A DNA stretch of 64,000 bases from Vitrella brassicaformis CCMP3155 (taxonomy: Eukaryota; Protista; Chromerida), in contig CDMY01000666.1 in the NCBI GenBank assembly GCA_001179505.1, positions 1 through 64,000 of the forward strand, written 5' to 3'. Under the pieces are notes generated by a model. That model saw only the letters and a program-made list of their open reading frames with translations, searched no databases and was not told the DNA's origin. Positions 12 to 52,014 of the stretch are shown one piece after another; position 1 is the first letter of the stretch, and each line of letters opens with the position of its first letter. The position numbers and the translations under genes were made by a program.

Positions 12-3000
12 TCAGGGCGATGCATTGCCGTCACCGCCGCCGTCTTGGTTGTCCTCCTCGGCTGGTGCATCCTCACCTGTCAAGTAGACACACACACGCA
101 CGCACACACACACACGCATAGCTGTGTGATGGCGACGGGCATTAGGGCGTGTGGTGTGCTGTGTGTGCCTTCCTCCTTCCTCGTGTGCACCTCCGCTGTC
201 GACGTCCATATCGTCCCAGCCACCGCCACGATGGCCGTCTGCACCACACACAAAGACAGACAGACAGACAGACAAGTAAATGCCATCCATCCATCCATGC
301 ATCCATGGCCACCATATAGAGGTGTCCCCTCTCTCCCTGTCCGTACCATCATCATCCTGCTGCTGGTCTTCTACTTGGCCGTCAAAGACATATGGCGCCA
401 CTCGCCCCAGCGCCACACGGGCCAGCTGAGTGGTCACGGGGAAGCGGTCCTTGAAGGGCGCATCCTCACTCACACCAGCCACAGGCGCCTCGGTCGTCCA
501 GATCCAAATCAACACTGCAGACAGACGAGAGAGAGAACAACACTGATGACATTTGACCACCTGAGCCTGTCTGCCATCCTCACCGGTGCCGTTTCCCACA
601 TCCAGAATCCAAATCCACGCGACGAAGTTGTGGCTGCTGTCAGCACCAGCCACCGCATGTCACCGTCCCGGCTGAGTGTCGTCGAGCATCCGGCCACCGG
701 TGTGTGGGGCGACTGAGTGAGGAGGCCATCCAGACGGCCGCCACCAACACGCCTCAACCAAGAACACACGCACACACACAATCACACACGCACCCCTCTC
801 GCCACTGCTGTCATTGGTGTGGTACCTGTTGAGCCGTATCCTTGTGCGATTGATCTGGTGAGTCCAGTAGAAGTGGCTGAGGACCATGCTCTTGGCGAAG
901 GACGACACCGACGCATCGGTGGTCGGACCGCGCGACACCCATTCGCCGTCTTCGTCCCGGCAGATAATGCGGCTGCGCACTGGTGGGTCATGCTGCTGTC
1001 GGTGCTGCTGATACAGATGGCCGGCAGCGAGGGGCGGGTTGACGGCCAGTCGGAAGCCGGGCTCGTCCTTGATGGCCCGCACCTCACCATTGGCATGGCG
1101 GACGATCTGCAGGCAGCTGCCGTCACCGAAGTCGATCTGGCGGCCGACCACCATGAGCTGCGCCAACACACGGGGGAACGATGAGTAAGCCTACACCACA
1201 CCACACAGACAGACAGAGAGAGAAGGGATGAGGCCTCTCTGTTTTCTCCCCGCCCCTCTGTGTGTGCCTTACCGTCTTGTTGACGTGTGTGTTGATGTCA
1301 TCTCTCGTGAGCATGAGGGGCAGCGTGCAGTAGCGGCACTGGCTGGCCAACTGCAGCACCTCCCGCGTCTCATCCCACCGCCCGCCCTCCTCGGCTATCC
1401 ACACCGCCGCCATGAGCTCACCAATCCCGAGCGATGGGTCGAACCGCAGCAGCTGCAGCCGCTGAGTGTTGATGCCATCTCCGTCACGGCTCAGTGAGTG
1501 GTCCAGTCGGCTGCGCAGCTGGTCTGACGAGAAGGCGTCTCTGATGTCTCGTGAGGCTGCCCTCAGCTGCAGTGTGGTGCTGATGTCGGGGGTGCGGCAG
1601 CGGTCTTCGGCAAACAGATGGGCGAGGGGGTGCTCCTGGCTGCCCCCCTGCAGATCGCACACACACGTAACAATGCAGATCGATACACTCACAAGGCACA
1701 TCTGGTGCATGGCGGTCGGTTGTATCAGACCCACCTGACAATGCTGCTGCTGCTGCGCTTGTTGTGGGTGGCTGCGGGTCGATGCGACGCCGTGGCGGTC
1801 GGGCGAGGCGAACAACTCGTCTACAGCATCGGTCACGATCTGCACACACCACACACAGACGACAGACAACGACATCAACATGGTGCTGTGTTGGCGATTC
1901 TACTGGTCTTCTGACATGCCCACCCCTTTGGTGGTCTGTGTGTCGCCCCACATGAGCCGCTGCATCCTCAACGTCGTCATGCTCGACTCCAACACCGACT
2001 CGCTAACTGAACTCTCAGCCTCAAGGGCCGCACTCTGACAATGAACAATGGGACACACAAACCCACACAGGCCATAGATAGGCCACGACACGTGTCGCTT
2101 TGGCTCACCCATATGCGGCCCGCTATCTGCTTCTGGTTGGTCTTGCGTGTGACGTAGACGGCCGTGGCGGCCAGCAGACGGACATCGCACCCGGCCAAAT
2201 CGATGTCGCACATCGACAAGAACTGCACACACACAGAAAGGCACACACAGAAAGGCACGGACAGACAGACAGACAGACAGACAGACAGGGAGAAGCCATG
2301 CGATGGCTGGAGGTGTCTGTGTGTGGCTGGCGGACAGACTGACCATGAGGTATTTGGCGAATGAGAACAGGCGGCCGTGGGTGTTCATGCCGGCAGCAGT
2401 GAACAGCTTATCCAGACACCCGATGCCGCACACAGAACTATCAGCCGCCGCGCGACCCACCACCTGCACACACAGAGCCAGACAGACAGGTCGGCGCTGC
2501 ACAGGTGAGCGTCGTGTGCGTGTCTGTGTCTGTGTGTCAATACCTTTGCCTGTGTGTGTGTGGGGTCATCCGGCATGTCGTCCATCAGCAGGTGTGGCTC
2601 CAGCCGCTCGACGCAGGCGGCCACACACGCATCTGCTACCTGTGTGTCAGCAGCCAGGCAAGTGACACACACATCCCATGAGTCCTTACTCTCTGTCTGT
2701 CATTCAGATCTCTTTGCCTGTGTGGCGTTGTTCGGGTCGATGAGTCTGTCTGCGCGGCAGACTCCAGCAGCCGCACCGCCCGCATGACGGTCGCGTCGCA
2801 ACAGCCCATCGACGCCGCTCTCTTGACCATGCCGTCCACCAACACGGCTGCAACACATCACAGACAGCACAGCACACCTTTGAGGGCATCTGTCGTCTGT
2901 TGTGTGTGCGAGTCGGGCGTACCTCTCTGCTGCGGCCATTTCATGCTACCGACCTGTTTGTCAGACCAACCGAAACACAGAGCACCTCTTGATTGATCAC

Positions 3001-3286
3001 TCATCCGGCATTCCCGCTCGATTATTTTCCTGCTCGCCTCACCGTGATGACTGCCGCCATGATGCCCTGCGGTGGGCCTCAGCGATGAGTTGAAACCATC
3101 AGTTTGTGTCTGATGGGGCTCCTGCTGCCCTCTGGAAGGCCGCACAAGCCCCACGAAGCGACGATTATCTGTGATCGGATCGACTCCGACGAGGGAGGGC
3201 TGTTTCCGGGCTCTGCGGACATTCCAGCGCCATTGGAGGACACACCATGGTAAGGGAAGCCGTCTTATGGCGCAGATCTGTCTCAT
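12..3286 (-). CDS. Multi-exon gene: divergent cyclin fold spliced to an F-box-like/lineage-expanded domain with an acidic tail (copy 1)
   Basis: Exon AVLVDGMVKRAASMGCCDATVMRAVRLL (from ~2847 down) resembles the cyclin N-box. Exons ...RLFSFAKYLM|FLSMCDIDLAGCDVRLLAATAVYVTRK...RIW|SAALEAESSVSESVLESS...KG|IVTDAVDELFASPDRHGVAS resemble the cyclin C-box. These join through phase-0 GT-AG introns to GGSQEHPLAHLF...LQLRAASRDIRDAF...QCRYCTLP...VLAQLMVVGR. The first exon and start codon are uncertain, and there is a 1-bp indel at ~2763 relative to copy 3. Confidence 0.55.
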
Positions 3287-3463
3287 TCTGTGTTGTCATC
3301 CATCTGTTCTCTCAGGCGTTCGTTGATGGGCGAGTGACGTAGCTCTCAGCACCAAAACAGAGGGCCGCTGAGCACCTGACCAGGTCAGTGAAGGACGGCA
3401 GAGAGCAACAATGGACCATTGCACTCTGTTTGTCTGTGTTTCGGTCTTCGCAGCTGTGGTCAA

Positions 3464-5340
3464 ATGGAGTCGGCGGCCAGCACAGCCGAGGCCACAGACG
3501 GCCACCCCTCGCCCCAAGCAGTGCTGACCAAGGCGAGAGACCTCTGCGATGGCATCCACACCAAAGAGGCCTACGACCAGACCGTCCTTCAGCGTGGTTC
3601 TGAGGCTCTGAGGCCCGACATCGCGTCTGTCACGACCAACATCTGCCATCTCATAGCCTCGGCGAGTGATGCTCATCTCAGGGCTGACGCCATACAGCAG
3701 CTCGCTCGGCTTCTGCACATTCTCCAAGTGGCTGTCACCATGGGGCAGACAGCTGTGGACGAGCACATCAATGGCATCCCCGAGAGAGCCATAGCTGCGG
3801 GTGTGGTGCCTGTCTTGGTGGAGGAGCTGAGCGGATGCGAGGAGGTGCAGCTTCAGGCAGCCACGGCCCTTAGGATACTGGCGTTCCATCATGCGGCAGT
3901 GGTGGCCAGTGCGGGGGCCGTTCCGCCCCTGGTGCAGCTCGTGCCATCACCCAATGAACGTGTGTGTGGAGAGGCGATTCTGGCGCTGTGCTTCATCACA
4001 CACGATTCGGCCACCCGTCGCGATGCCGTGCTGGCCGCCGGTGTCCTGCAGCCCCTGCTGACAGTGATGCATGAGAGTGATAGCGCCGATGCGCTCGCCT
4101 GCGGTGCCCACCTGGTGCACAGTATGTCGCGTATCCGGCCTCTGTCGGTCCCCCTGGCCGAGTTTGCCCGGTTCGTACCGGTGCTGGCCAGCCTCGTTGG
4201 GGACTTCGTTGGTGAGTTTGAGCAGCATGAAGACGACCGTGTGCTGATGTCGTCACGAGCAGCCTTGGCGGAATTCGCGGGGTTGTGTGTCGGGGGCGAA
4301 GGTCAGTGAGGGTGCATTGATCGCTCATTCATGGCTCACTGTGTCGTACTGCCCCAGGTGACGATGCTGCTCGTGACGCGTTGGTCCAGTGTGGCGCCGT
4401 GGCCCCGATCAAGACCCTCCTGCAGAGTGCCGATACAGTTGAAATGAAGGGCACCGCGTGCATGATAGTGTACTTCGTGACTGCAGGTGAAGGAGAGTAC
4501 CATCACACACACACACACCATCTCTCACGTCACGCGTAGCGTGCCTTCTGGTCCATGGATGCAGGTAGCACTGCTCACCGGCAGGCGATCATCGATGGCG
4601 GGCTGGTGCCTGTGCTCGTCGACGTGGCGGCCAGCGAGGTCACCGGCGGGCAAGTGCATGCCGGTCTGAAGCAGATGGCGGGGAAGGCCATCATGAACAT
4701 TGTAGCCGATGGATCGCAGCAACAGGTGTGAATCAACGTATGTGTGCTCATTCATTCACTCATTGGACCGTGTTTTTCGTCCATTTTTTTATGCAGATGG
4801 AGCAGGTGGCTGAGTGCGGGGGCATTTTCAGCGTCCCTGCGGCATGCTCGAGGCCGACAATCACGATTTGCTCGTAAAGATGACGCTCGTAGTGCTGCAA
4901 AAGATACTCATGTAAGTCCGCACCCATGCCATCGTGTGTTGCCCATGTGTCTTGCCCATGTCTGCTGCGTGTGTGCAGTGCGGGTGAGGAGAAGCAGGCC
5001 AACGAGGGCCTCCCCGACAACCCCTACCAACAACTAGTACACCAGGTTAGTGGACAAGAGAGGAGCAGAAAGCACCAGAACCCGACACACACGGCTTTCT
5101 TGCTCTACATTCCGTGCAGGCCGGCGGTGTGGACAAGATAGTGACGCTGCAGGCGCACGATGATGCTCAAATTGCCCTGCAGGTGCCTGCCTGCACCCCA
5201 AGGGCCAGAACACACATCATGTCTTATCTTATGTTCAGGCTGTGGTAGTCCTCGCGCACTATTTCCCGGCTCACGCCGACGCGCAGGTGCTGCTGGCGGC
5301 CGCGACTCTGGCGGCCTTTTACGGCAGCATCCGCAATTGA
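3464..5340 (+). CDS. Importin-alpha-like armadillo-repeat protein with no IBB domain and an apparent frameshift
   Basis: ARM-like repeats: AGVVPVLVEELS..EEVQLQAATAL, AGAVPPLVQLVPSPNERVCGEAILAL, AGVLQPLL, CGAVAPIKTLL, GGLVPVLV. Importin-alpha-like C-terminus: GEEKQANEGLPDNPY...AGGVDKIVTLQAHDD...VLAHYF. The frame breaks in the T run at ~4824-4828. Confidence 0.7.
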
Positions 5341-32770: not shown

Positions 32771-33245
32771 GGACCAGATAAGGCAATATATACAGTAACA
32801 GGCATCCGGAAATGATGACCATGGAGAGGAGGACGAATTATCTAGCAGGAGGGGGACGTACTATTATTTCTGACGGGGCTCGAGGAGTCGCCCAACCGCA
32901 CAGGACCAATTGTGGTGTTCCGACAACTGTATTGCTGAGCACAGATGCACGCATGCACTGGTGCCTGAGCGGTTCGTTTCAACACAGACGTCATACGCAG
33001 CTGCTGCACATGCTCCTGCACGTTGCTGAGGGGCAGATCTGTGAGCCAAGCCAGAGAGACGGTAGGCGGGATGGAGAAACCCAGAAAAATCGCCGGTTTC
33101 GTTACGGCCAGGAATGCGAGCTTATGTATTGGGACAGGTATCCGTAACCGCATGTGAAGCAAAGGTTCGAAAAAGAGCAAACGCTGTATGGAGGAGTGAG
33201 TGAGTGAGGCAGTGGAGATCTGCTGACGCATTGAGGAGATCTTTG

Positions 33246-36200
33246 ATGGCTCACGTGCCTCCGCCGACAACACCAACGCGCACCCAGTCCCCGAACGAAG
33301 ACGCCATGTCTGGAGGGACGACGGCCAAGCAGAACGGCAGCCCGTATGTGGCCTGCTTCGCTGGACAGGTAATGGGCGGGAGGGGGGACACACACACGGG
33401 GACACACGCGGACACACACGCGCGTGCGCAGAGGTGTGAAGCATCACAGAGAGACGCTCTCCACGCAGCGCACGACAGCACTCACTACGCCAGACGCACC
33501 GGCACCAAGCAGCAGACACTCGCATCCCTCCCTGTGTGTGTGTATCATGCAGGCGGTAGGGGACTACATCGCTGACCTGCGGGCTTTGTATGAGGAGTAC
33601 CCGAGCATCCGTCCGTTTGTGGAGCACCTGTCGCAGCAGCTGTACCACGAGGTCGAGGACGAGGCTGTGGGCATCGTGCAGCGACTGGGCTTCCACAAGT
33701 ATGGCTTCGACGTCATGGAGTGGATACGCAAACCAGAAACCACACCGCCACAGGTCACCCTACTACCAGACAGAAGGGCAGGCTGTCATGCAGACAGACA
33801 GGAGATCCATTGAGGGTCCTGTGTGTGTCTGTGTTGTTTGCAGAGTTACCTGTCGTTCGCGCCCATCAGTTTCCCTATGATCTTCTTCGTCCAGATGACT
33901 CAATACCTATGCGTACGCGGCCAACACACACACACGCCAGACAAGCACACCTGTGTGTACGTCATCGTGGATGTGCTTCGTGTGTGCAGACGCTCGAGGA
34001 CATGGGCATGACCCCTGGCGAGTTCCGCGGCCTGCTGCACGCCGCCATCGGCCACTCACAGGGGCTTGTGGCCGCCGCATGCATCGCACACCGGGACGCA
34101 CACACTGTCGAGGGACTCCAGAAAGTCGCTGGAAACGTACGTGACACGAGCGACAGACGTGGGTCGACATGCATCCATGTCTGTGCCTGTCTGTGTGTGT
34201 GTGTGTGTGTGTGTGTAGGCCCTTCGTATGATGTTCTGGAATGGGCTGCGGCTGCAGTACGCCTATGGCCACCCCAGGAGGGTGGCGCCTAACGTTTTGA
34301 ACGCCGCCGTCGAGGCGGGAGCGGGCAAACCCACACCCATGCTGTCAATCAGGTACACACGCCCACCAGCTCCATACACTCACACATGGGCATGCTCACG
34401 CACACCGACGGCCACTTTCTCTGTTTGTGTCTGCAGAGGATTGCCCGTGCCTTTGCTGACGGCGAGTCTGGCAAAGGTGAATGCGTACCTGCCGCCGACG
34501 CACCACGTCCACATCGCCCTCAAGAACGGCCCCGACTTCACCGTCGTCGCAGGGGACCCCTCGGCCCTCGTGCAGGTCATCGAGGCCATCAAACCCATGC
34601 AGGCCGCTCCATCCGAGGACCAGACCAGGGTGCCGTTCAGCCAGAGGAAGCACCCGGTGGCCTTTCAGTTCCTGGACGTTTCCACGCCGTTCCACTGCAG
34701 GTGGGCTTTGAGATTGCACACGTACCACCGTGATGTATCGGCATCAATGTGTGGCTTTGTGTGTGTGTGTGTGGTTGTCAGTTTGTCTGAGTCTGCTGTG
34801 GCCAAGGTTGCCGACGACATCGGTCGTTTGGGCCTGTTTGCCGACTGCAGCCAGGCCAGCCCCCTGACCATTTCCTGCCTGTCGAATGAAGACGGCACAC
34901 CCCTCAGCGACAAATGCAGCACCTGGAACGACGTGAGCACCCCCCCACCCACCCACACACAGATACCACTTTCTCACATCTCCCTCGCTCCCTGTTCAGG
35001 TTGCCATGGAGTTGGTTCGCCTGCAATCGGTGGTGATCAACGACTGGCTGTCGGTGTGTCGGAATGTGGCCGCCATGACGGCCAGCGTCACGCACGTGCT
35101 GGACTTCGGCCCCGGTAAGGCGGGTGCGTCCATCGGGGGGCTGACGGCGAGGAACCTCAGGGGCTCGGGCATCGGGGTGGAATTCGCACCCACACGTGCA
35201 CTCGAGATCAAAGTCATGAGGTGAGCAGGCGCACGCACTCGTGGATGCAACTACACGTGTCTGTGTGTGTGTGTGGTGGTGGCGGTTTTGTTCGTTCAGT
35301 TTGCAGCCAGCAGTGAACTGGCTCGATGAGTTTGGTCCCCGTGTGCGGCTAGACGTGCACGGCCGACCGTATGTCGACACCAAGTTCCGCCGATTGCTCG
35401 GAAGGCCGCCCGTCATGGTCGCCGGCATGACACCAACTACCGTCAAGGTGACACAAAAGCCATCCCACGTGTGCACATGAGTGGATGGATGGATGTGTGT
35501 GTGTGTGTGTGTGCGCGTGATTGTGTTCTTTTCTTTTGTCAGCCGCGCATTGTCAAGGCAGCGCTCAAGGCGGGTTTCCACGCCGAGATCGCTGGCGGCG
35601 GGCAGCACACCCCCGAGATATTCAAGAAAACCGTCAACGACGTTGTGCAGAGCATCGCGTCAGTGCCTGGCAGACAGACAGACAGACACACTCAACACCC
35701 TCTTCCTCCTCTCCCATGTGTCTGTAGTGACGGCGAGGGCGTGTGGTTGAATCTGCTGTTTTTGAATCCCTTCCTGTGGAAGATGCAGTACCCCCTCATA
35801 CTCCAGCTCAGGCGCGACGGCTGGCCCATCCTCGGCGTCACTGTGGCGGCAGGCGTCCCCAGCCCCGCCAAGGCCGACGAGATACTCGCCAACTTCAGAA
35901 GCGTCGGAATGTAAGCAACACACCAACCACCAAGTCATCTCACTCTGTGGACAAAGAAACACGTGTGTGTGTGCGTGTGTGTGTGTGGCAGTCATTGTGT
36001 TGCGTTCAAGCCTGGGTCGGTGCCGGCCATCCGAGCGGTCCTGGAGATAGCTGACCGCAACCCTGACACGCAGATCGTTGTGCAGTGGACGGGCGGCCGC
36101 GCTGGCGGGCACCACTCATTCGAAGACCAACAGTAGGCAACGCCCCGCCCGCTCTCACACAGCACGCATGGATCCCTGTGTGTCCCCTCAACCAGTGCGC

Positions 36201-39200
36201 CGATTCTGACCACGTATCACGAGATCCGTGCTCTGCCCAACACCATCCTCGTTGCCGGCGGCGGCATCGGCGACGGCCTCTCTGCGTGGAAGTACCTGAG
36301 CGGCCAGTGGTCTCTCCCCTACAACCGCCCCCCGATGCCCTTCGACGCCATCCTCATGGGCTCGCGCGTCATGGCCTGCGAGGAGTCGTGGACGGCAGAC
36401 GAGGTCAAGGAGATGATTGCCAAGGTCGAGGGGCTGCCTCTGGATAGGGAGAAGGAGTGGGAGCAGAGCTATGGGACGAAGGGGTGTGGCGGGGTGCTGA
36501 CGGTGACAAGCGAGCTGGGCGAGCCCATCCATCTGGTCTGCAACCGGGCGGCAAAGCTCTGGCGGGAGCTGGACGATCAGTACTTCAACAAGTGAGTTGG
36601 AGAGATGGGGGAAGGAGACAGCCACGGAAACAACAAACTATCGTCCCCATGCTTGTGTGTGCCTATGTGTTTGGCAGGTTGCCCGATGACCAGCTCACCG
36701 CGGCTCTCGATCGCGATTGGCTCAAGATCGCCCAGCGATTCAACGACGACTACCAAAAGGTCCGTGTGTGCAGATAGAGACACACCAAAACACTACCAGA
36801 CCACGTCTCCACAATCTTTTTCTTTGCCCCCTCTCTGGCTTGCAGCTGTATTTTTGTGAGAAGAAGGACGGCACCATCGTGCGCAGCCTGTCCCACATGA
36901 CCTACGAAGAGGTCGCCCTCCGTCTGATCAACATCTCACGATCCACCACGCCCTCCCCGCCCAGGTGGCTCACTCCCCACTTCAAGGAACGCCTCGAGAG
37001 GTGGCTGCTGCGCGCGGCCGAGCGGCTGGCGAACAACGAGATTCGGCAGGCCGGCGGGAAGCTGTTCGCCACACATGAGCTCGAGGACGATCCTGAGGGT
37101 GTGGTGCAGAGGCTGGTGGAGAAGGTGCCCGAGATCGCCACCCGATTGGTGTGCGCGGCGGATGAAGACTACTTCATCGAGGTGAGAGGGTGGATGAGAG
37201 GATGGGTGGTCGGATGGGTCAGAGTGGTGATGGTTGTGTGCATGTTTGTGGTTCTTTTTGAACAGATGTGCAGGATTGTGTGGATGAAGCCGCCCAACTT
37301 CATTCCTGTCATCGACCCGTCGCTTAAAACATGGCTCAAGAAGGACAGCCTCAGCTACTCCGAAGACGACATCCGATTCGTCAAAGACAGAGACCCGCAG
37401 AGAGTCATCGTAAGCAACATACAACACCGAACGGACCGAAAGCACCGAATGGACAAAACAAAGAAACACCTACTCCCCGCCACTGTCTGCCTGTCTGTGT
37501 GGGTCAGACGATCCACGGCCCGATAGCCGCCGGGTACACGCACAAGGCCAACGAGCCCATCTCAGACATCCTCACCAACATCCACAAGGACCTCATCGAG
37601 CAGGCCGGCCCCCCCGTGGGCCAGGACGCCCCCCCGCCGGTCGGCGACCCCTCTGGCGAGGGCAACTGGAGCATGACACTGCCGAGCGAGCCTGGCGCAA
37701 TTTCCAAGGTCAAGGCCTCTCACTGGCTGGAGAGGCTTGCAGGGCCGGAGAGGATCTCATGGAAGAGGTGGGAGTAGAGAGCCGAAGGAATGAGCAATGG
37801 TGGAGGCCTGCCTACGTGTGTGTGTCCATGTCTGTGTGTGTCAGGGCGCTGCTCACTGCGCCGCACATCGTGCGCGATAAGCGCTGGGTGGCCAACGACC
37901 TGGCACGGCTGTTCTACCCCCGCGCCTCGCAGACCTTCAAGTGCAGCGACACATCCATCCTCATCTTCGACCCAGACATCACCCGCCTGGGCCTCGACCC
38001 GTCCCTGCCATCACTTGAGGCCACGCTCGTCGCCGGCAAGTCCGCCGATGCGCCCACTGTGCGGGTCGTGCTGCGCCACCCCATCATTTGTTGTGAGAAT
38101 GGGGGCGGGGGAGGGGGGAAGGGCAAAGGCAAGGAAGACCCCCATGCGGAGCTGTGTCTCGAGTACCGCTTCTACGCCGACCGGCCGTGGGCGCCGATCG
38201 TCGAGGAGAGCTACGAGGACCGCTGCCGCAAGATAGCTGCGTTTTACACGGCGGTGTGGATGCCCGAGGGCTGCAGGAAGGGCGAGGAGGTCATCGACTC
38301 GCTGGGTGTGCGGCGGTTCAGACACTCTATCTCGGAGCAGACCCAGGGATACGAAGACCTTGACACGGTGAGGGGGTGGGCGAGGGGCAATATGCGGCTA
38401 AATATGGATGTGTGTATATGTGGTGTGGTGTGTTGCGCAGGCGCCTCTGGAGTATGCCATCGTGCTGGCGTGGGACGCCATCCTGACGTCGCTCATCGGC
38501 GACCGGCCCCTGGGTGACCTCTTCCGACTCGTCCACCTCTCAAATCAATTCAAGCTCCTCGACCTCAACCAAAAGCCATTCAAAGTGAGACCACACCCAC
38601 AGACACACACACACACACACACTCTCTCTCTCTTCTTCTGTTCTGTGATCAGGTGGGCGACAATGTTGACGTGAGTGCGATGCCGACCAGCCTCGCCGAC
38701 CGCGACGAAGGCCGGATCGTCACGGTTCGTGCGCTGGTGTCGCGCAAAGGCCAGTCGCCCCTGGTGCGCATCGACTCATCTTTCCTCTTCCGCGGCCCCC
38801 TTCTTGAGGAGGAGAAAGGCTTCACCGTCATCGAGAGGGATGTCGACGTCTTTGTGGCCGACGACGCCGTCAAGGGCGTCCTTATGAGCAAGGACATGTG
38901 GCACGACCTCAAGGCCACCGACGTGCTGGTGGGGGTGGCGCTGAGCCTTAAGGTCGAGAGCAGGGAGGAGCGAATCGGAAACGGAATGAGCAAATTCGAG
39001 ACTAAAGGTAGGCGAGCGGGACACACAGACCAAAGGGATTGATGCCTCAATGATAACCATGTGTGTGTGTGGGTGTTGTCTGCGACTCTTTCTCAGGCAC
39101 GATAACCCGTTCTGGTGTGCAGATCGGTAGCATCTCCCTGACGACCCCGTCGGCCACCAACTGCCCCGTGCTGGCCTTCCTCGACCGCCACGGCACGCCC

Positions 39201-42200
39201 CATGACAAGATGGCCCCGGCACCGCCATGCACCTACCGCACTCAGCTCGACAGGGCGCACCACAGCGACGTGCCATACGCGTTCGCCTCCAGGGACACAA
39301 ACCCACTCCATGTACGCTGACACCGAGAGACACATGCGAGGTAGTGCCATGTTGGCATGGCATGGTGTGTGGGGTGTGTGTTTCTGCAGGTGAGTCCGTT
39401 TGCGGCGGCTTTGGCCGGTTTGGATCGCCCCATAGTGCACGGTATGCTCAATGCGGCAAGGGCGCGTCAGGCCATCGAGGCGGCCGTGGGCGGGCCTGTG
39501 GTCATGATCAAGGCGGAGTTCGTCGGCATGGTGCACTCGGCTTCAAGACTGAAGACCAGCTGTAAACACACACCCACCCACCCACCCACACACACACACC
39601 CCGGTACACATGTGCGTGACTCGCTCTCTCTGTGTGTGGGTGTGTGCGTCAGGCACGTTGATTGGTACGCGTCACGGGTCTCGTGTGGTGCAGTGGGAGC
39701 TCAAGACAGAGGACCCCCACCGAAGGGGCAACTGGGTGCTGGCCGTCAAGGGGACCGCCGAGGTCGGACAGCCACCCATCACTTACCTCTTCACAGGTAC
39801 ACGACACACCCACTCCCCCTCACAGCACATAACCAGGCACACAGAGGCAACCACGAGTGTTTCCTCTCACAGGTCAGGGATCTGCCGAGGCCAACATGGG
39901 CATGGACCTCTACAACACGAGCCACGCCGCCCAGGCGGTGTGGGACCGTGCGGACGCCTTCTTCAAGCAGAAATACGCCTTCTCCATCATCGACATCGTC
40001 AAGCGCAACCCCAAGGAGCTCTGGGTCTCGTTCCTCGGACAGGGCGGCGACCAGCTGCGGCAGGCATACGCCGCCATCCGCAAGAGCGGCAAGGACGGCA
40101 AGGATGAGGCGCTCTTCCCGGAGGCAGAGGACAGCAGCGCACCTGGCATCAGGTTCTACGCATCCGAGGGGCTGCTCTTCGCCACACAGTTCACGCAGCC
40201 TGGTAAGAGTGCATGGATGTGCACCCCTTATAGCTATATGTGTGCAATGGTCTTGTCTTCTGTCAGCGATTCTCCTGTTCGAGAAGGCATGGTTTGAGGA
40301 CCTCCGTGCCCAGGGTTGCGTGCAGCCGTCAGCTCTCTTCGCCGGGCACTCTTTGGGCGAGTATGCGGCCCTGTGCAGCGTGGCCAACGTCATCCCGATC
40401 GAGACCATCGCCGAGCTGGTCTTCCTCCGAGGGCTCACCATGCAGTCGGTCGTCGACAGGGATCACCTCTCTCGATCCCGCTACGGCATGGTGGCTTTCT
40501 CGCCGTCGCGCGTGGGCAAGTGGGTGACTGACGACATGCTCGAGGCTCTCGTGACCGGCATCGATCAACGCACTGGACGGCTGCTGCAGGTAAATAGTCT
40601 GGGCGGGAGGGTGCTGACGGACGGACGGGGGGATGGAGAGAATTGTGTGTGTGGGTGTCTGTGTATGTGTGACAGGTTGTCAATTACAACCACAAGGGCT
40701 CCCAGTACGTCATCGCGGGCGACCTCACCGCCCTCGAGACCCTACGACTCGCCGCCGACAAACTCGCTAAGGAGCCGGTGAGCAGGCAGACCACCACACA
40801 CACCTACACACACAGACCTTTTTCGTTCCCTGTGTATGTCTGCTTTCCTCAGCCCACCGACCTTCCCAAGGGTCCTGCGTCGTCCTTGCCGCCATCGGTG
40901 GAGGCACTGATCGGCTCGTGCTGGGCGGATGCGCTCGAGACCGAGCAGCGTGCGGCCGAGAGGGAGGGGCCGGGCCCGCTAGGCGGCGAGACGGGCGGCA
41001 TCGGGGGCTTCGTGCCGCTGCAGCGAGGCACAGCCACCATCCCACTCAAGGGCATCGACATCCCTTTCCATTCACGGTGAGGGGCAGATGGAAGGACGGT
41101 GGGATGGCTCGGTGATTGTGTGTGCGGCTTCTTGATTCAGGTTGCTGCGCAAGGGCGTGGGGACTTTCAGGCGGCTGCTGGAGCACGGTCTCGCCGCCGT
41201 GGAATTCCCTCCCAGCGTCTTTGTGGGCAAGTATTTCCCCAATCTGGTGGGCCGTCCGTTCTCCCTCACCGAAGGCTTCATCGAGGCGGCGCTCAAGGCC
41301 ACTGAGGGCCAGTCCAACTCACTCAAAGACCTGCTGGACAAATTCGACGAGTGGAAGGAGGACGAGCGGGCCATGACCAAGAAGCTGCTCATCTGCCTGC
41401 TCTCGTGGCAGTTCGCATCACCTGTGTAAGCAGCAACCGATAAATGGATGACCAACATATATGTGCGCATTCTCGGCTCTCCTATGCTGCTTGCCTGCAG
41501 TCAGTGGATCAAGACCATGTCCGGCGTAGGCGAGCACTCGCCCAGCGGCCCTCTGCAGATCATCGAAATAGGCCCCGCCCCGGTGCTGGTGCGGCTGGCC
41601 CGTCCCCTGCAGCAGGCCAACCCCCTGGCGACTACCTTGTGGATCACCAAGGACCGCGACACCATCTACTGCCACGACACGTCCATCGACGAGGACGAGA
41701 TCATCGATGACGGCGGGCCGAGCCCCAGCGAGGCGGCACAACTGTCGGCCATCGACACCACCGTCGGTGGCGGGAGCGAGAGTGAGAGGATGGAGAGCCC
41801 GCAGAGGGGCGAAGGCTCGCCTGTGGCCAGTGCTCCACAGGTGGGCATCATGCCTGTCGGGGAGGTGGTTGACGTGCCCATGGACGCGCTGCACGCGTTG
41901 CGGTCCCTCCTGGCCACAAGGCTGCATCTGACGCTCGATGAGGTGCCTCCCACTGCCACCATCCGTGCCCTCTGTGGCGGCAAGTCGGCTCTGCAGAACG
42001 AGGTGGTCGGCGACCTCTCCACCGAGTTCGGCAGCGAGCCCGAGGGCGCCTCCGACAAGTCTCTCGAGACGCTGGCGCGAGACCTGGGTGCGGGCTACAC
42101 CCAGCCGGGCAAGATACTTACCAACCTGACCTCCCGCATGCTCACCAAGATCATGCCGGCGCCGCTCTCGACCGTGTCCAAGGCCAGGGCCTGTCTGGCG

Positions 42201-45200
42201 GGAATGGGTCTGGGCGAGAACTTCCAGAATGGGGTGCTGGTGCACGCCGTGGCTCACGAGCCAAGCAGCAAGTTTGGCGGGGAGGGCGAGGGCCGGTCGT
42301 GGCTGCGGAGCATGGCTGAGAAGTATGCAGACCTTAGGGGAGTTGCTATGCCTGCGGGCGGAGCCGCCATGGGGGCTGGGACCGGCGCTGGTAAGTGGGT
42401 GGGTGGGAGAGTCCGCACGCACACACCCGAACACCGAAAGGACAAATTCACCCACGCGCACTGGTGTTTCTCGTGTCGTGTTAGGGTCTGCGAGTGTGGC
42501 CGTGATTGATGCCGCGGCGCTCGACGACCTCAAGTCGGCCCTGCGCAGGTCCATCGACGCCCTGCGGCAGTACACCGACCCGTCGCCATCCTTCGAGGAG
42601 GAGCAGCTGATCACCAGCGCACTCACCGACCTGGAGAGGCTGGAGCAGGGAGTCGCGCCATCGTACGTCTTCGACGAGCACGGCCCGAGGTACCTGAGCA
42701 TGATCAAACCCATGTTCAAGCCACCGAAGGTGAGCCAGAGAGGAAGGGATGTGTCCAATGTTGTCTGGAATTGGTATGTGTGGTGTTTGTCAGGTCCGCA
42801 CATACGACTCCTCATGGGCGTGGGTTCGTGTGGACGCCATGACGGCCATCCACTGCCCCAAGCTGCTCTCGCCCCAGGACCCAGACCTCACCCTGCTCAC
42901 CCAGAAGGTGGCCAACACCTCCTCCCCCTCCCTGTGCACCCTCCTCGAGACGCAGGCCGCACTCCTGGCGCAGACAGACAAGGCAGACAAGGGCAAGGCT
43001 GAGAGGGCCCGCATTCTGGCCCAGGCTGCCATTAAGGGGCTGAACCGGCCGCCGGTGTGGCTGGAGACGCGCGAGCCTCGTGTGCCGGCCATCGAGATAA
43101 CGGACGACGGGACGGTGTCGCTGGCCAAGAACCCGAGGAAGAGGCACGACAAGCATGAGGGCTTCTCGGGATTCGCTCTTGAGATGTTCAACAAGTGAGT
43201 GAGCAAATGGGCGGGGGGATGGGTGAGAGAGACATCGGACGGTCATTCTGCTGATGTGGATGGATGGATGGATGGATGTAGGTCGACAGAAGAGACTAGA
43301 AACCGCTGCTTCGGCCTCAACCGCGCCCTGCCCGGGCAGCGGCTGCCTGAGAACCACCAGCTGGACGCCATATTCTCTGAGGCCATGACCACAACGGCCG
43401 ACGACGGGCTGTCTTTCTACGGCAAGGTGGCGCTTGTGACGGGTGCTGCCGTGGGCAACATCGCCTTTGAGGTCATCAGAGGGCTGCTGATGGGCGGCGC
43501 CAGGGTCATCGTGTGCACCGCATTCCCTGAGGAGGGATCCATCTGCTCGTACGAAGTCTTCAAGGACCTTTATCAGGTCAGTGGGTGTCTGTCTGATGGC
43601 TGGGGAATTTGTCCACGTCCACACACGTGTGTGTGTGTGTGTGTGTGTGTCTGGGTCAGTCGTGTGGAAGCAACGGCAGCAGCTGTGTGGTGGTGCCGAT
43701 GAACGGGATGTCGGCCATCGACTGCAGTCGCGTCATCGACCACGTCTTCGACGCCGTCCTGCCAAGCCTCCAACCCCTCCCTGTAAGAACCCACAGCACC
43801 AAAACACTGACGCCGATGCATGCGTGTGTGACCTCTCCCTCTCCCTGTCCCTCCCTCTCCTGTGCCTGTCTTCACTGGTCAGCTGAATCACGCTTCCTCG
43901 GCTCCGTCCATCCCCCACCTCGACCTGTTTGTGCCCTTCGCGGCCATCCCCGAGACGGGCCGGACCATCCAGATGATCGACGACCGGTCCGAGGCGGCCC
44001 ACCGCCTGATGCTCACCAACGTCCACCGCTGCATCGGCCGCATCATGGAGAAAAACCCCAGGGGCGTGCCGCCCTGCCATGTCATCTTGCCACTCAGGTG
44101 AGCTGCTTGGAACTATGGTGTGGATGGATATGTATCTGCTGTTGGGGTGTGTGCTGTCTGTCTGTCAGTCCCAACAAGGGTCTGTTTGGTGGGGATGGTC
44201 TGTATGGCGAGAGCAAGATCGGCCTCGAGACCCTGTTTGCAAAGTGGAAGAGGTGAGGGTCGACGAACGAACACGGCACGGCGGCGCACACCTGCACCTA
44301 CCTACCATCTTTCCCTTGTGTGTCCGTGTGTGTGTGTGTGTGTGCAGTGAGGGCTGGCAGGATCGCGTGTCGATAGTGGGTGCGGAGATGGGATGGGTCC
44401 GCGGCACGGGCGTCATGTCCCACAACGACATGGTCGCACCCGACATCGAAAAAGACATTGGCATGAGGGTCAGTCACCCGCCCCCTCTCCCCCTTGCCAT
44501 GGACACTCCTGTGACGCGCTGCTGTCTTGTCTGTCTGCGTATATATGTGCAGACGTTTGCCCAGATGGAGATGGGTTTCACTCTGCTGGTTTTGTGCCAT
44601 CCCCGGCTCGTCGAGGCCGCCCGCACCCACCCCCTGCGGGCCGACCTCACCGGCGGCTTCAGGATGGGCGCCAAAGGCATTCCCGTACGAACAAACCACA
44701 AAAAAAAGTCACGCCACTGCCTCCCTATGTGTGTGTTGTCGCTGTCTTTATGTGTGCGTGTGTGTGCAGGCCGCGGCGATCCGTGCGCGCATCATGAAGG
44801 ACGCGGGCATCCGCAAGGCCATCCACCAGGACGCCATCAAGGACAGGGAGGTCACTGCACAGGAGAGCGGCAAGGAGGCAGCCATGGTGGCGGTCGACGG
44901 CCGCCAGGCAGACATCCGTGTGGACTTCCCCGAGCTGCCCACCAAGCGGCGCCTGCAGAGCCTCCCCGACCTCACCGGCATGCTTGACCTGAAATCACAG
45001 GCACGTGAAGAGCGGACGAGACGAGCACACATGCGGTGCGGTCATCTGTCTGTCTGTCTGTCTGTCTGTGTGCTGGGTTTGTGTTGTGTTGTGTGTCATC
45101 AGGTGGTGATAGTAGGTTTCGGCGAGGTGGGCCCGTGGGGATCGTCCCGGACGCGCTGGGAGATGGAGGCCTTTGGGAAGCTGACCATCGAGGGGGCGCT

Positions 45201-48200
45201 GGAACTCGCCAGATGGATGAATCTCATCAAGTACCACACCGGTCAGCCACACCAGCAACCATACCCACACCACACCACACCACACCACACACCGTTTCTC
45301 TGTGTGTGCAGGGCCTCTGGCGACTTTATCCAATCGGCCCTACACAGGGTGGATTGACTCGTCGACGAGCCAGCCCGTTAGCGAGAAGGACATCCTCCCC
45401 ACCTACCACTCCCAGCTGCTGCAGCACTGCGGCCTCCGCCCTATCGACCCGGTGTGGTTCAGAGGCACCTACGTCCCCACCGAGAAGATGTTCATCAGCG
45501 AGCGGGCGCTCGAGGGAGAGATGGAGCCGTTTGAGGTGACCAGCAGGGAGGAGGCCGAGTGGTTCAGCAAGTACCATGGCCACAGAGTGGATGTGGTGGA
45601 CATGCCCGATGGCAGCGTGCGGGTGAAGCTCAAGGAGGGGGCCAAGATCTATGTGCCAAAGGCGATGCCCTTCTCGCGAAGGGTGCGGGGGCACACATCG
45701 CCACTGAGCACATACACGCGCCACACACGTGCCTCTTTCCTTCTCTGTGTGTCTCTCAGGTTGGTGGTCAGCTGCCCAATGGGTTCGACCCGGTGTCCTT
45801 CGGCTTCCCCAAGGACCTCAGCACCCGTGTCGACCGCGTCACACAGTGGGCGTGCGTCGCATTCGCAGAGGCGCTCACAAGCGCCGGTCTGCTGGATCCG
45901 TATGAGTTGTACGAGCACGTTGGCATCAGTGAGGTGGGCACATCCCTGGGCAGCGGCATGGGCGGCCAGGCGTCCCTCAGGGACATCTTCAGGGAGCGAT
46001 GGCTTGAAAACGACGTACGCCCCTCATCCTCTGACCCTTCGAAGACGCCCACCACAACCCCCCTCTCCTCATGTCTGTTGTCCTGTCGGCAGGTGAACGG
46101 CGATGCTCTCCAGGAGACCTTTGTCAACACCCCAGCGGCGTGGCTCAACATGCTGCTCGTCAGCTCTGCCGGCCCCGTCAAGCCATGTGCTGCCGCGTGC
46201 GCCACGGCGGGCCTGTCTGTGGAGCTAGGCGTGGAGACCATCCGCAGCGGCAAGGCGCAGGTCATGATCACGGGAGGCACTGAGGACTTCACCGAGGAGG
46301 GATCCTTCGAGTAAGCCCCACTCTGGGGAACGAACACCATACACCTGATCTTGCTGCATCATTTCTGTGTGTGTGTCTTGGCTTGGGACAGGTTTGCGAG
46401 CATGAAGGCGACGAATGACTCGACGCTGGAGGTTACTGCCGGCAGGCGGCCGTCAGAGGCGTCGCGGCCGTTCACTTCGACCCGCGGCGGCTTTGTGGAG
46501 TCCTGCGGCGCCGCCATACACATCATCACCACCGCCGAACTCGCAATCAAAATGGGACTACCCATCTATGGTGAGAGAGACAGACGAGACCTAAACACAT
46601 ACACGCAGAGGACTCTCTTTGTCTCTCTCTGTGCGTGTGGTGACATCAGCGGTTGTTGGTGGTGCTGAGACGGCGACAGACAGGGAGGGTCGGTCGGTGC
46701 CCGCGCCAGGTACCTCCTGCCGTACACGTTGCAGCCATGCGGCCACACGATGTGCCTCGAGTGCCTGCTTCCGGCCGCCGTTGTCGGCCGCAAACAACGG
46801 AGCGTGTGTGGAGCGTGTGTGTGTGTGTGTGTGTATGTGTGCGTTCGTACAGGCCAGGGCATCCTGTGCACCGCCCGGGAGTACCACCCGCCGTCGGGCT
46901 CCCACGTGCCACACCCACTGCTTGAGCTCAACTACCGCAAGGAGGCACTCAAAGACGAAATGCAACAGGCATGCGCCCACTCCCTCACTTAACCACACAC
47001 AGACTCAGAGGCGGTCCAATTCCTCTGCGTGGGTGGGTGTTCAGATCGCCGATTGGCGTGCGAGGAAGGTGTCAGAGGGCACCGCACCCGAAGGCGTCAT
47101 CGACCGCTTGTGTGAGGCCAAGTGTCAGCGCGCGCGGCAGTACTGGGGCAGCGAATTCTGGAAGGGCGAGGAGGCCATCGCGCCGCTGAGGGGCGCCCTG
47201 CACGCCTATGGCCTGACCATCGACGACCTCGACGTCTGTTCGATGCACGGCACGTCCACACAGCTCAATGACAAGAACGAGAGCCAAGTGCTCAACAGAC
47301 AGCTGGAGCACCTCGGACGCAAGAAGGGTGCGTGGGGGCGTGTGCGTGTGTGTGTGGGTGTTGGGTGACGGCCATCTTCACTCTCTCTCTCTCCCTCTCC
47401 CTTTGTCTGTGTGTGTGGTATAGGTCATCCGCTCTTCACGATCTGGCAGAAGTGGCTGACGGGCCACCCCAAGGGCGCGGCGTGTGGATGGATGGTCAAC
47501 GGCCTCATCCAGGCCATGCACACCGGGCTGCTGCCCCCCCAGCGCAACGCAGACAACGTCGACAGCGCCCTGTGCGACCAAGCCTACGACGGCATCCTCT
47601 ACTCCCATCGGCTCATCGACGTCGGGCGGCCGCTCAAGGCCGCCATGGCCCACTCGTTCGGTTTTGGCCAGGCCAACACGGAGATACTCATCATTCACCC
47701 CGGTAGGGGCACACACCACCCACCACACACACACAATTGGCCTGCTTATGTGGTCATGTGGTTGTGCAGACTACCTGTGGGCGTCTGCGGGCACGTCCAA
47801 GTGCACGGCGTACTCGGCCAAGCGGGCAGTCAGGCAGCAGAAGGCCTCGCAGTTCCTTTACGAGACTCTCGCCGACAGACAGAAACTCATTCAAGGTAAC
47901 AGGAGGCCCTACGCCCGCACCCACATCCACGCACAGACACACACACCTTTCTCCCTCCCTCTCTGTGTCTGTCTGTGTGTGGATGTGCAGTCAAGACATC
48001 GCCCCCCTACTCGCCAGATGCGACGATGGAGACCCTCCTCAATCCCTCGGCCAGGGCGAGTGTCCAGCCCCTGACGCATCGGTATGCCATCGACCCCGCC
48101 AAGTCGTCACCCACGCACATCGCCGAAGGGCAGCCGTCGCTCGAGCAGACCATCAAGAAGCTCGCCACAGACGTCTTCAACGCACAGCAGCTCCTCAAAC

Positions 48201-48857
48201 AAGACAGCAGGTACCCTCACCCATCCACCCGGCCCACACACACGATGGCCCTCATTGTGGGCTGTTGCGGTGTCATGTGTGTGTGGTCAGTCTGCATGTC
48301 GACTCGCACAGTGGCGCGCTGGCCACCACGGGCTGCTATGTGGGTGTGGACGTCGAGCCCGTCTCGACCTTCGCCCAGCACTCAGAGCGCAGCGACTTCA
48401 TTACGCGCAACTTCACGGCAAAGGAGAGGGCCGAGGCCTTCGGACAGCCCCAGCAGCAGCAGGGATCAATGACAACCAACAGTGTGCGGGCTGCTGTTCG
48501 TCTGGCGGGTCGGTGGTGCGCCAAGGAGGCCATCGTCAAGGCCATGGGCAACCTCGGAGAAACCAAATCACCCCCTGTGAATGTCACACTCGACCCAAGT
48601 ACACACAAACCCCACACACATCATCAGAATGCGCCCCAAACATCTGTGTGTCTGTCTGTGTTGCAGGTGCGAGTTTGGTGGACATCGAAGTGCTGTCTCT
48701 GAGCAGCGCGTCCCACGGCGTACCGTTGGTGTCGCTCTACGGCCGTGCGGCCGAGGTGGCCAAGACGATGGGCGTCACACACCCCACCAAGCAGATCAGG
48801 GTGTCCATCTCCCACACAGACGAGCAGGCCGTCGCCATGGCCGCCATACACCTCTGA
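33246..48857 (+). CDS. Single-chain fungal-type type I fatty acid synthase (AT-ER-DH-MPT-ACP-KR-KS-PPT), more than 40 introns by my count
   Basis: AT: [11 protein letters not shown] and GHSQG (34050). FMN-type ER: [25 protein letters not shown] (~36096), [18 protein letters not shown]: DTNPLH (~39293), IVHGM. MPT: [14 protein letters not shown] (40344), [17 protein letters not shown]: GGKSALQNE (41976). KR: [16 protein letters not shown]: [16 protein letters not shown] (Cys ~46198), HGTST (47246), [11 protein letters not shown]: GVDVE, WCAKEA, VSISH. Stop at 48855-48857. Confidence 0.93.
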
Positions 48858-50556: not shown

Positions 50557-52014
50557 TCACGCAGCGACTGCCGTCTGCTCGGCATAGTACCCTGGGGGCG
50601 CTCTCGCTTCGTCCACAGGGCCAGCACTATAGTCTGTGTCACTCGAATGAGACCTGATAACAAAACCACACACACACACGAGGCAGAGGTCAGAAGTGCA
50701 GACACACGGCTGTGTTGTGTGGTGTGTTTGGGTATGCCTGAAGAACGCGTCAAAGTCATTGGTTGGGGTGCCCTGCCCCTCATCCCTGCTGCCGAGGTCG
50801 AAATTCCGGTTCTTGGCCGCATCACATACCAAGCTCTGAACCAACACCTGAGTGAACGCACCATACGCGCACATCACCCATTTGGCCCTCGTCGCCCACC
50901 CACCCACCTCGGCAAGGTCAGGTCTGGACACCGACACAGTCACCCTCTCTCCCCCTCCCTCAGCTCTCCGCTGCCGCAACAGGTCATCATTCACACCCCA
51001 CACCAGCTCACGACGGCCGCCGGGTGAGTCTACAAGAGAGCCTGGGTGGCAGATGGTGTAGGTAAGGCCGGACGCAATCACGTACTCCTCGGCCTTCCTC
51101 TTCCACCACAGTATGTCGCCGCCTGTGCCGTCGCGCTTGCGGCCAACGCGATTGAGCTCGTTTTGGGGGTCGTTCAGGTAGACGCTGAGGCCCCAACAAA
51201 CAGATAGACAGACAGACAGACGGACAGACAGGGGGTGAATGGTGTGCGTGTTGGGAGGAGGATGTGGCGTACCTGCAAGAGGTTCCCATGGTGCTGCAGA
51301 GAACCACATGCTCCACACCCACTCTCTTGGCGCTGTCAATAAGGTTCTTTGTCCCCAGCCAATCGACCTCCCTGCACACACACACACACACACACACACA
51401 ACACACACAACACACACAACACGCCTCACAAATGTACGACACTACGCAGCGCCTCCGTCCGCCCCTGCCGCCCGCACACCTGGGTGCCTGTCCTCTTTTA
51501 TATCTCCACTCTGACGGCGGCTTCTGCCCTCTCCTCGAGAACAGCCGAGCCACCAGCCGCCTCAGGAGAAACCGCCTCGTCGGCACAATCACCGCCCCCG
51601 AACAGATAATCATGTACTGACACTGCGATGACGCCAGGGACTCATAGACCTGCCCATGGTCCCTCACATCCGCCACAAAGACTTGGTCTTCAGCCGCCCC
51701 AGCCTTCTTCAACCGCCTCGCCGCCCCTTTGGAGCGCACCATTGCGACGGGGCGGAAGATGTGAGGCTCCCGCTGCAGCCGCTTGAAGATCAGATGGCCT
51801 GTCCGCCCAGACGCACCAGTGATCAGCACCTGAAAATGCAGGCACACACAATTCTTTTCGATATGCAGCCCTTGCCATGCCATGCCTGTCAGTGTGTAAG
51901 GATGCAACCTGTTACCTTTGGCAGCTGTGCAGGGGCGGCCGAGAAGGCGCATTGGGAGCTGATGGCCCATCGAACGGCGTCACATAGGAGCAGCAGCTGG
52001 AGAAGGAGCCTCAT
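50557..52014 (-). CDS. Atypical SDR / NAD(P)-binding Rossmann-fold protein with an N-terminal signal-peptide-like leader
   Basis: MRLLLQLLLLCDAVRWAISSQCAFSAAPAQLPK|VLITGASGRTG...VDWLGTKNLIDSAKRVGVEHVVLCSTMG...ILWWKRKAEEYVIASGLTYTICHPGSL...RRELVWGVND...FDLGS. Splice phases are consistent. Confidence 0.85.

Follow-up and report, generated by a model that had tools for sequence, protein, structure and literature searches.

The locus examined here raises the question of whether a chromerid alga possesses a fatty acid synthase (FAS) of the fungal, barrel-forming class. The window analyzed, meaning the whole stretch of 64,000 nucleotides, was taken from Vitrella brassicaformis CCMP3155 (contig CDMY01000666.1, assembly GCA_001179505.1), and the gene in question, hereafter Vitrella FAS, lies on its forward strand. 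An initial annotation, made from the letters alone, had read this gene as a fungal-type single-chain FAS with a built-in phosphopantetheinyl transferase (PPT). Such an enzyme does not appear in the published models of chromerid lipid metabolism. In the chromerid genome paper, only 'modular multi-domain FASI/polyketide synthase enzymes' and FAS-II were reported, and FAS-I was inferred from triclosan experiments to make short saturated chains (PMC4501334). In the chromerid fatty acid paper, giant modular enzymes were presented as 'Type I FAS', the word 'fungal' was never used, and de novo synthesis was concluded to be plastidial, with C18:0 resisting high triclosan (PMC7464705). One chromerid lipid paper considered cytosolic fatty acid synthesis to be probably lacking in chromerids, and the phototrophs with FAS-I were given elsewhere as only Euglena, Paulinella, and Cyanophora, all with a cytosolic fungal-type enzyme (PMC11714747). 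The present analysis indicates that the locus is very probably a nuclear gene for a single-chain FAS collinear with Fas1 and Fas2, vertically shared with Chromera velia and serving cytosolic de novo synthesis.

The gene model was obtained from the public protein CEM29078.1 (P0001; UniProt A0A0G4GH80; V. brassicaformis CCMP3155; 3804 aa), for which threading on the window gave 100% identity. When the longest stop-free piece (39345-40778) was used as query, an exhaustive profile search also led to a single 3804-aa protein, at 95% identity. The public entry is located on a 305-kb Vitrella contig and carries the label 'unnamed protein product'. The coding sequence (CDS) starts with the ATG at 33246 and ends with the TGA at 48855-48857, and its reading frame of 11.4 kb is uninterrupted after removal of 50 introns of 63-184 nt (median 81), of which 48 are GT-AG and two are GC-AG. 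As an in-frame TGA precedes the annotated ATG, a longer N-terminus is impossible unless a further 5' exon exists, and no upstream coding stretch or exon resembling FAS_N was found by tblastn. Even the raw plus-strand reading frames between 33 and 49 kb match fungal-FAS-specific Pfam families, namely, Fas1-AflB helical, FAS meander, MaoC, acyltransferase, Fas_alpha_ACP, and KS. The GC content is 55-63% in the window and 63.5% in the FAS exons, with 82% at third codon positions (GC3). Table 1 summarizes the features of the locus.

Table 1. Features of the Vitrella FAS gene and protein (positions refer to the window; residues refer to CEM29078.1).
Feature	Residues	Position	Strand	Basis
In-frame TGA 5' of annotated ATG		33201..33203	+	sequence reading
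Complete CDS, single-chain fungal-type FAS (3804 aa, 51 exons, 50 introns)		33246..48857	+	exact threading of P0001, tblastn
AT domain, active Ser154 in GHSQG (34056-34058)	~30-420	33333..35170	+	Pfam SAT 37-297; motif alignment
ER region, FMN TIM-barrel homology, GGRAGGHHS	~430-1010	35198..37681	+	Pfam, PDB alignment to FAS beta, motifs
Fas1 helical/ER (Fas1-AflB-like_hel)	613-974			Pfam
Meander	1022-1073			Pfam
Stretch with direct RNA support		38139..43196	+	spliced run X7 contigs: exons 18-21 and exons 24-31
DH domain, His1451 in NPLHVSP	~1190-1530	38296..39717	+	Pfam FAS1_DH_region, MaoC; motif alignment
FAS1 DH region	1200-1294			Pfam
MaoC	1434-1522			Pfam
MPT domain, Ser1695 in GHSLGE, Arg in FLRG	1552-1957	39781..41363	+	Pfam Acyl_transf_1; motif alignment
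Acyl_transf_1 (MPT)	1552-1801			Pfam
Seamless Fas1/Fas2 junction		41355..41366	+	PDB alignments; inside exon 28 (41141-41425)
Single ACP domain, phosphopantetheine Ser2140 in GGKS	2098-2260	41859..42347	+	Pfam Fas_alpha_ACP; PDB 2ml8 match
Fas_alpha_ACP	2102-2260			Pfam
FAS_I_H	2293-2475			Pfam
KR domain, Tyr2713/Lys2717 in YGESK	~2500-2950	43310..45352	+	PDB alignment FAS alpha 631-1875; motifs; weak adh_short match
KS domain, Cys3181/His3404/His3445	~3000-3560	45500..47879	+	Pfam ketoacyl-synt N and C; motifs
KS	3063-3473			Pfam
C-terminal PPT domain, GVDVE and WCAKEA	~3640-3804	48292..48854	+	Pfam ACPS; PDB alignment
ACPS (PPT)	3656-3728, 3656-3772			Pfam

The domain order was determined using Pfam and an end-to-end alignment to solved fungal Fas1 and Fas2 chains. 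It runs acetyltransferase (AT), enoyl reductase (ER), dehydratase (DH), malonyl/palmitoyl transferase (MPT), acyl carrier protein (ACP), ketoreductase (KR), ketosynthase (KS), and PPT, which is the eight-domain order that the initial annotation had assigned to one gene. The motifs quoted there were all located, namely, GHSQG at residue 152, GHSLG at 1693, GGKS at 2137, ACATA at 3180, HGTST at 3404, GHPKG at 3444, GVDVE at 3657, and WCAKEA at 3714; further motifs are YGESK of KR at 2713 and NPLHVSP of DH at 1451. Accordingly, the catalytic residues are intact (Ser154, His1451, Ser1695, Ser2140, Tyr2713/Lys2717, and Cys3181/His3404/His3445). The catalytic motifs, including the MPT Arg, the ACP GGKS, the KR YGESK, the KS Cys-His-His, GVDVE, and WCAKEA, are kept throughout a 12-taxon alignment. 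Compared with homologs, the only large deletion is that of the N-terminal FAS_N segment, and otherwise a few short low-complexity insertions were seen.

Individual domains agree with this assignment. The built-in C-terminal PPT was confirmed by a Pfam ACPS match, by the conserved GVDVE/WCAKEA motifs, and by alignment to Fas2 as far as residue 1883/1887. MPT has the GHSLGE motif and the conserved Arg of a release-type enzyme, so transferase activity is predicted, and no thioesterase family occurs among the Pfam matches of the protein. The ER region aligns continuously with the solved ER of fungal FAS beta and conserves GGRAGGHHS and AGGG, which is consistent with the proposed flavin mononucleotide (FMN) type; FMN use is thus predicted. 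As a separate observation on ER, the motifs GGGQ and GGG(I/M)GD (residues 498-512 and 648-664; ~35.5-36.4 kb) occur in the chromerids, in the environmental protein P0008 described below, and in Mycobacterium, with Paulinella having the second motif, while the motifs of fungi and oomycetes at those sites are GGGH/AGGL and GSGFG. These motifs are possibly clade markers or retained ancestral states.

The class of the enzyme was evaluated by comparison with solved and known FAS systems. In phmmer searches against solved structures, fungal FAS beta and alpha chains were matched at E = 0 with 1040-1200 bits, and mycobacterial FAS with ~1005 bits. Residues 26-1955 align with Fas1 (FAS beta) ~150-2050, and residues 1958-3801 with Fas2 (FAS alpha) 6-1883. 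Thus, Vitrella FAS shares with the alpha6beta6 barrels of Saccharomyces cerevisiae and Thermomyces lanuginosus (PDB 2uv8, 4v58) the eight activities in identical order, ~3700 collinear residues (E = 0), an ER of the FMN type, release by MPT, and a PPT at the C-terminus. Unlike those enzymes with their two chains, it consists of a single chain, joined without a linker and encoded by a gene with 50 introns; it also lacks the ~120-residue N-terminal FAS_N segment (PF17828) of fungal Fas1 and has the ER motif GGGIGD where fungal FAS has GSGFG. Mycobacterial and corynebacterial FAS-I (CMN-FAS; PDB 4v8l, 6gjc) resembles Vitrella FAS in its single chain, its AT-to-KS order, the absence of FAS_N, and the ER motifs GGGQ and GGGIG. 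However, CMN-FAS is ~3070 aa long, scores ~1005 bits compared with 1200, and forms the outgroup clade, and the C-terminal PPT is missing in the Mycobacterium row but present in Vitrella, in line with the earlier statement that mycobacterial FAS-I has none.

Modular FAS-I/polyketide synthase (PKS) enzymes, such as Cryptosporidium CpFAS1 and Vbra_3754, are also cytosolic type I megasynthases, and the Vbra_3754 class is present in the Vitrella genome (PMC7464705). However, they consist of KS-AT-DH-ER-KR-ACP modules with an ER of the medium-chain dehydrogenase/reductase (MDR) type and belong to an unrelated architecture class. A grouping of Vitrella FAS with modular PKS or animal FAS was therefore rejected on its different domain order and on its KS region, for which the best solved matches beyond fungal and CMN-FAS are stand-alone FabF-type KS II enzymes (E ~1e-20). 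No PKS-type domains (PS-DH, KR PF08659, or PP-binding) were scored by Pfam. The fungal-type Pfam order and the matches at E = 0 to fungal FAS chains thus bear out the placement in the fungal barrel class.

Since yeast divides these activities between two chains, the continuity of the Vitrella gene across the point of division is essential. Residue 1955 corresponds to yeast Fas1 2049/2051 and residue 1958 to yeast Fas2 residue 6, with no linker between them. Four public runs were compared with 37500-43499, and two of these behave as genomic DNA because their contigs run through introns. In contrast, the contigs of run X7 skip annotated introns exactly at GT..AG, and 12 introns were confirmed in this manner. 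A 996-nt contig connects exons 18-21, and a 3068-nt contig connects exons 24-31 (39867-43196), from MPT through ACP. Four of the confirmed introns lie inside a 478-codon stop-free stretch and are thus genuinely removed. As the Fas1/Fas2 junction falls within single exon 28 and within the 3068-nt contig, one transcript passes across it, as the initial annotation had supposed. Transcription and splicing of Vitrella FAS are established over the central third of the gene.

The introns also bear on the origin of the gene. A (TG/CA) run of at least four units is present in 30 of the 50 introns, and the density of such repeats is 9.8/kb in introns, 0 in exons, and 2.9/kb in the rest of the window. 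The initial annotation had described more than 40 host-style microsatellite introns, and runs of this kind are common elsewhere in the window. Moreover, the gene was found in public DNA runs from several studies. The repeats are also arranged with a polarity (33369-48666, 50 introns): the mean relative position is 0.26 for (CA)n and 0.69 for (TG)n, and CA at the 5' end is combined with TG at the 3' end in 13 introns and reversed in one. The first intron halves contain 28% A and 14% T, and the second halves 12% A and 35% T. Compared with shuffled sequences, the folding energy of the introns is weakly lower (mean z -0.54; 9/50 below -2), and pairing between the two intron ends is conceivable.

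A search for relatives, including the ortholog whose presence in Chromera had been suggested as a check, returned Chromera velia Cvel_3823 (UniProt A0A0G4FWX6; 3825 aa, 43% identity, 99% coverage), which is named automatically 'Fatty acid synthase subunit alpha' in UniProt. It has the same domain set as Vitrella FAS, and the orthology is one-to-one; the two differ in the AT motif (GHSSG in Chromera, GHSQG in Vitrella) and in small indels. In the fatty acid paper on chromerids (PMC7464705), the main-text tables do not include Cvel_3823, and no match was found in its text supplements; the entry 'Vbra_51.t1, 3829 aa', placed there among 'Other KSs', may represent the Vitrella FAS gene. No mention of the accessions, of Cvel_3823, or of fungal-type FAS in chromerids was found in the literature outside subscription journals, and the enzyme appears to have been overlooked. 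No further named alveolates were found with full-length and KS-PPT fragment searches, which were word-based and length-limited, so that absence is not shown.

Beyond the alveolates, single-chain proteins of the same architecture, including PPT and ~3900-4350 aa long, are widespread in non-fungal eukaryotes and fungi. They were found in the oomycetes Phytophthora, Bremia, Plasmopara, and Hyaloperonospora, in the protists Cafeteria, Euglena gracilis, Paulinella micropora, P. chromatophora, Cyanophora paradoxa, and Thecamonas trahens, and in the fungi Mycena, Lentinula, Entomophthora, Mucor, and Neocallimastix. The proteins of the other protists (~4000-4300 aa) are only 32-36% identical to Vitrella FAS, and Phytophthora FAS has two ACP domains and a Fas1 thioesterase-like insertion domain, whereas Vitrella FAS has one ACP and the insertion domain was not scored. 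FAS_N is absent from the Pfam lists of P0001 and P0161, with ~90 N-terminal alignment columns missing, and it is also missing in Chromera, Phytophthora, Cyanophora, Paulinella, and mycobacteria. Consequently, the initial annotation was right that a chromerid carries a fungal-type FAS with PPT, but it overstated the novelty, as the architecture is widespread outside fungi and the public annotation already includes the gene.

The closest non-chromerid relative is P0008, an environmental protein of 4014 aa (L001/L002) encoded by an intron-free 12-kb open reading frame (ORF) on contigs of 12.5-13.1 kb with short flanks. These contigs look like full-length mRNAs from a eukaryote. In addition, a fungal-type single-chain FAS was found annotated as a locust gene (P0173; XP_049851436.1, 'Schistocerca gregaria' LOC126326034, 4348 aa, 206-kb contig); in the trees, it pairs with the Logan protein P0162 beside the clade of Euglena and fungi, and its source is probably a symbiont, parasite, or contaminant and not the insect. 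In marine sediment metagenome runs X11-X16 (2023-2025), 5-33% of the 31-mers sampled from 39345-42506 were present, which hints at Vitrella or a near-identical relative in marine sediments.

The phylogenetic position of Vitrella FAS was determined from 3598 columns under LG+G4 and from 34 rows and 2425 columns under C20-PMSF, with bacteria as the outgroup. The supports are SH-aLRT values from quick searches, the letter composition is heterogeneous, the sampling did not include the split FAS of ascomycetes, and the groups in the topology tests were chosen after inspection of the trees. In both trees, Vitrella and Chromera are sisters (SH-aLRT 100), and the pair joins the environmental sequence and Paulinella in a clade with a support of 99-100. 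A separate clade contains the sampled fungi and is adjoined by Euglena, and the oomycetes and Cafeteria are placed elsewhere. A forced clade of chromerids and fungi was rejected (delta lnL 367; p-AU 4e-48), and the chromerids, which lack FAS_N, are placed outside the subclade of fungi and Euglena. Judged from these trees, the gene was not acquired recently from any of the fungal lineages in the sample, and the enzyme may be read as an old, patchily retained eukaryotic FAS that predates the split of Chromera and Vitrella. A clade of chromerids, Paulinella, and stramenopiles (SAR) was marginally disfavored under LG+G4 (p-AU 0.02), a value that does not discriminate between an ancient transfer and vertical descent with differential loss.

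With respect to function, Vitrella FAS most likely makes saturated acyl-CoA de novo in the cytosol and is activated by its own PPT. By homology with the solved enzymes of yeast and Thermomyces, AT would load acetyl and MPT would load malonyl onto the single ACP, after which KS, KR, DH, and the predicted FMN-dependent ER would cycle the chain. MPT would then release the saturated acyl chain (~C16-C18) as acyl-CoA. The C-terminal PPT is expected to turn the apo-ACP of its own chain into holo-ACP during assembly, and assembly would, by homology, give a hexameric two-chamber barrel of ~2.5 MDa. We infer the hexameric barrel, the product chain length, the cytosolic site, and the share of cellular fatty acids.

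The cytosolic site is suggested by the N-terminus. The first 50 residues are hydrophilic and without a signal-peptide-like core, in agreement with the earlier statement that no targeting peptide is evident. As chromerid plastid proteins require a signal peptide (PMC4501334), this N-terminus argues for a location in the cytosol. Moreover, a cytosolic acetyl-CoA carboxylase (ACCase), Vbra_9562, is listed for Vitrella (PMC7464705) and could provide malonyl-CoA. The lack of a signal or transit peptide together with this reported ACCase would thus fit de novo synthesis in the cytosol of chromerids in addition to plastid FAS-II. Several points weigh against this reading of the gene and its role. The Pfam models for ER (NMO) and KR are below significance, so that the assignment of both domains rests on collinear homology and motifs. 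Exon 1 is unconserved, and the annotated start codon is a putative one; the RNA check spans exons 18-31 in the central third of the gene. At 0.55-0.63 substitutions per site, the chromerid branch is rather long. Finally, all de novo synthesis has been assigned to plastid FAS-II (PMC7464705, PMC6668581), and under that model Vitrella FAS could be minor or stage-specific.

Four other explanations were weighed. A specialized FAS of secondary metabolism, which like aflatoxin HexA/HexB would make a short or unusual starter chain for a PKS, is unlikely, though it survives best of the four. In its favor, dozens of KS-containing megasynthases occur in Vitrella (PMC7464705), the bulk fatty acids are held to come from plastid FAS-II, the chromerid branch is long, and AT has its highest score with the Pfam SAT model, whose name refers to the aflatoxin starter transferases. 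However, the SAT model is also the best one for housekeeping FAS, such as that of Phytophthora, and the housekeeping motifs, including GHSLGE and Arg of MPT, are all kept in an enzyme with one-to-one orthology in both chromerids. Moreover, no PKS adjoins the gene among the flanking ORFs with Pfam matches.

A main role as an elongase of plastid-derived acyl chains, as proposed for Cryptosporidium FAS-I, is still less likely, as the AT of Vitrella FAS is of the acetyl-loading kind with GHSQG intact, and all domains of the fungal de novo set are present. To our knowledge, fungal-type FAS are de novo synthases. An elongation role was preferred for cytosolic FAS-I by the chromerid authors (PMC7464705), but that proposal was about modular enzymes with acyl-ligase loading domains. 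It is highly improbable that the gene is a decaying or inactive relic, although plastid FAS-II could make it redundant, because the 11.4-kb frame is open, the catalytic residues are intact, the RNA is correctly spliced, and the gene is kept in two chromerids at only 43% identity. Least tenable is that the gene is a fungal contaminant or was acquired from a fungus by recent horizontal transfer: among the solved structures, the best named matches are fungal, but the TG/CA-style introns, the size of the contig, the DNA runs of several studies, and the Chromera ortholog exclude contamination, as the initial annotation had argued from the introns, and the position outside the sampled fungi and the absence of the FAS_N of the fungal and Euglena clade oppose a fungal origin.

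The surroundings of the gene were also inspected. No lipid or PKS neighbors were found with Pfam among the flanking ORFs, where only an NAD(P)-binding protein and an armadillo repeat were scored. The former, downstream at 50560-51979 (-), gave NAD(P)H-binding, NmrA-like, and epimerase-like Pfam matches in two stop-free pieces and has no evident link to FAS. The latter is a stop-free piece at 3392-4306 (+) (Pfam Arm, E = 4.5e-13) that adjoins the cyclin/F-box-like gene of the initial annotation.

The finding adds no new enzyme architecture; the class and its non-fungal occurrence were already known, and its added value is the presence in chromerids. As chromerids are a reference point for reconstructing the path from a free-living alga to an apicomplexan parasite, in which lipid supply is central, an intact, expressed canonical synthase in Vitrella with an ortholog in Chromera contradicts the account in which only modular FAS-I/PKS and FAS-II are present (PMC4501334, PMC7464705). 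Contrary to the published list (PMC11714747), chromerids join the few phototrophs with a cytosolic fungal-type FAS, and one more gene loss is added to the apicomplexan lineage.

In 1999, Heath et al. reportedly showed that triclosan acts on FabI-type enoyl reductases. Since the ER of Vitrella FAS is predicted to be FMN-type, the enzyme is a reasonable candidate for the source of triclosan-tolerant saturated fatty acids. A broader scenario can be put forward tentatively, namely, that the common ancestor of chromerids and apicomplexans had plastid FAS-II, modular FAS-I/PKS, and a barrel FAS, of which the barrel was lost towards parasitism and, in living chromerids, would still provide a cytosolic de novo route that triclosan is not expected to inhibit. 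If true, this could account for the persistence of saturated fatty acids, C18:0 above all, in Chromera treated with triclosan, and it could contribute to reconciling the conflicting 2015 and 2020 models of how chromerids synthesize fatty acids.

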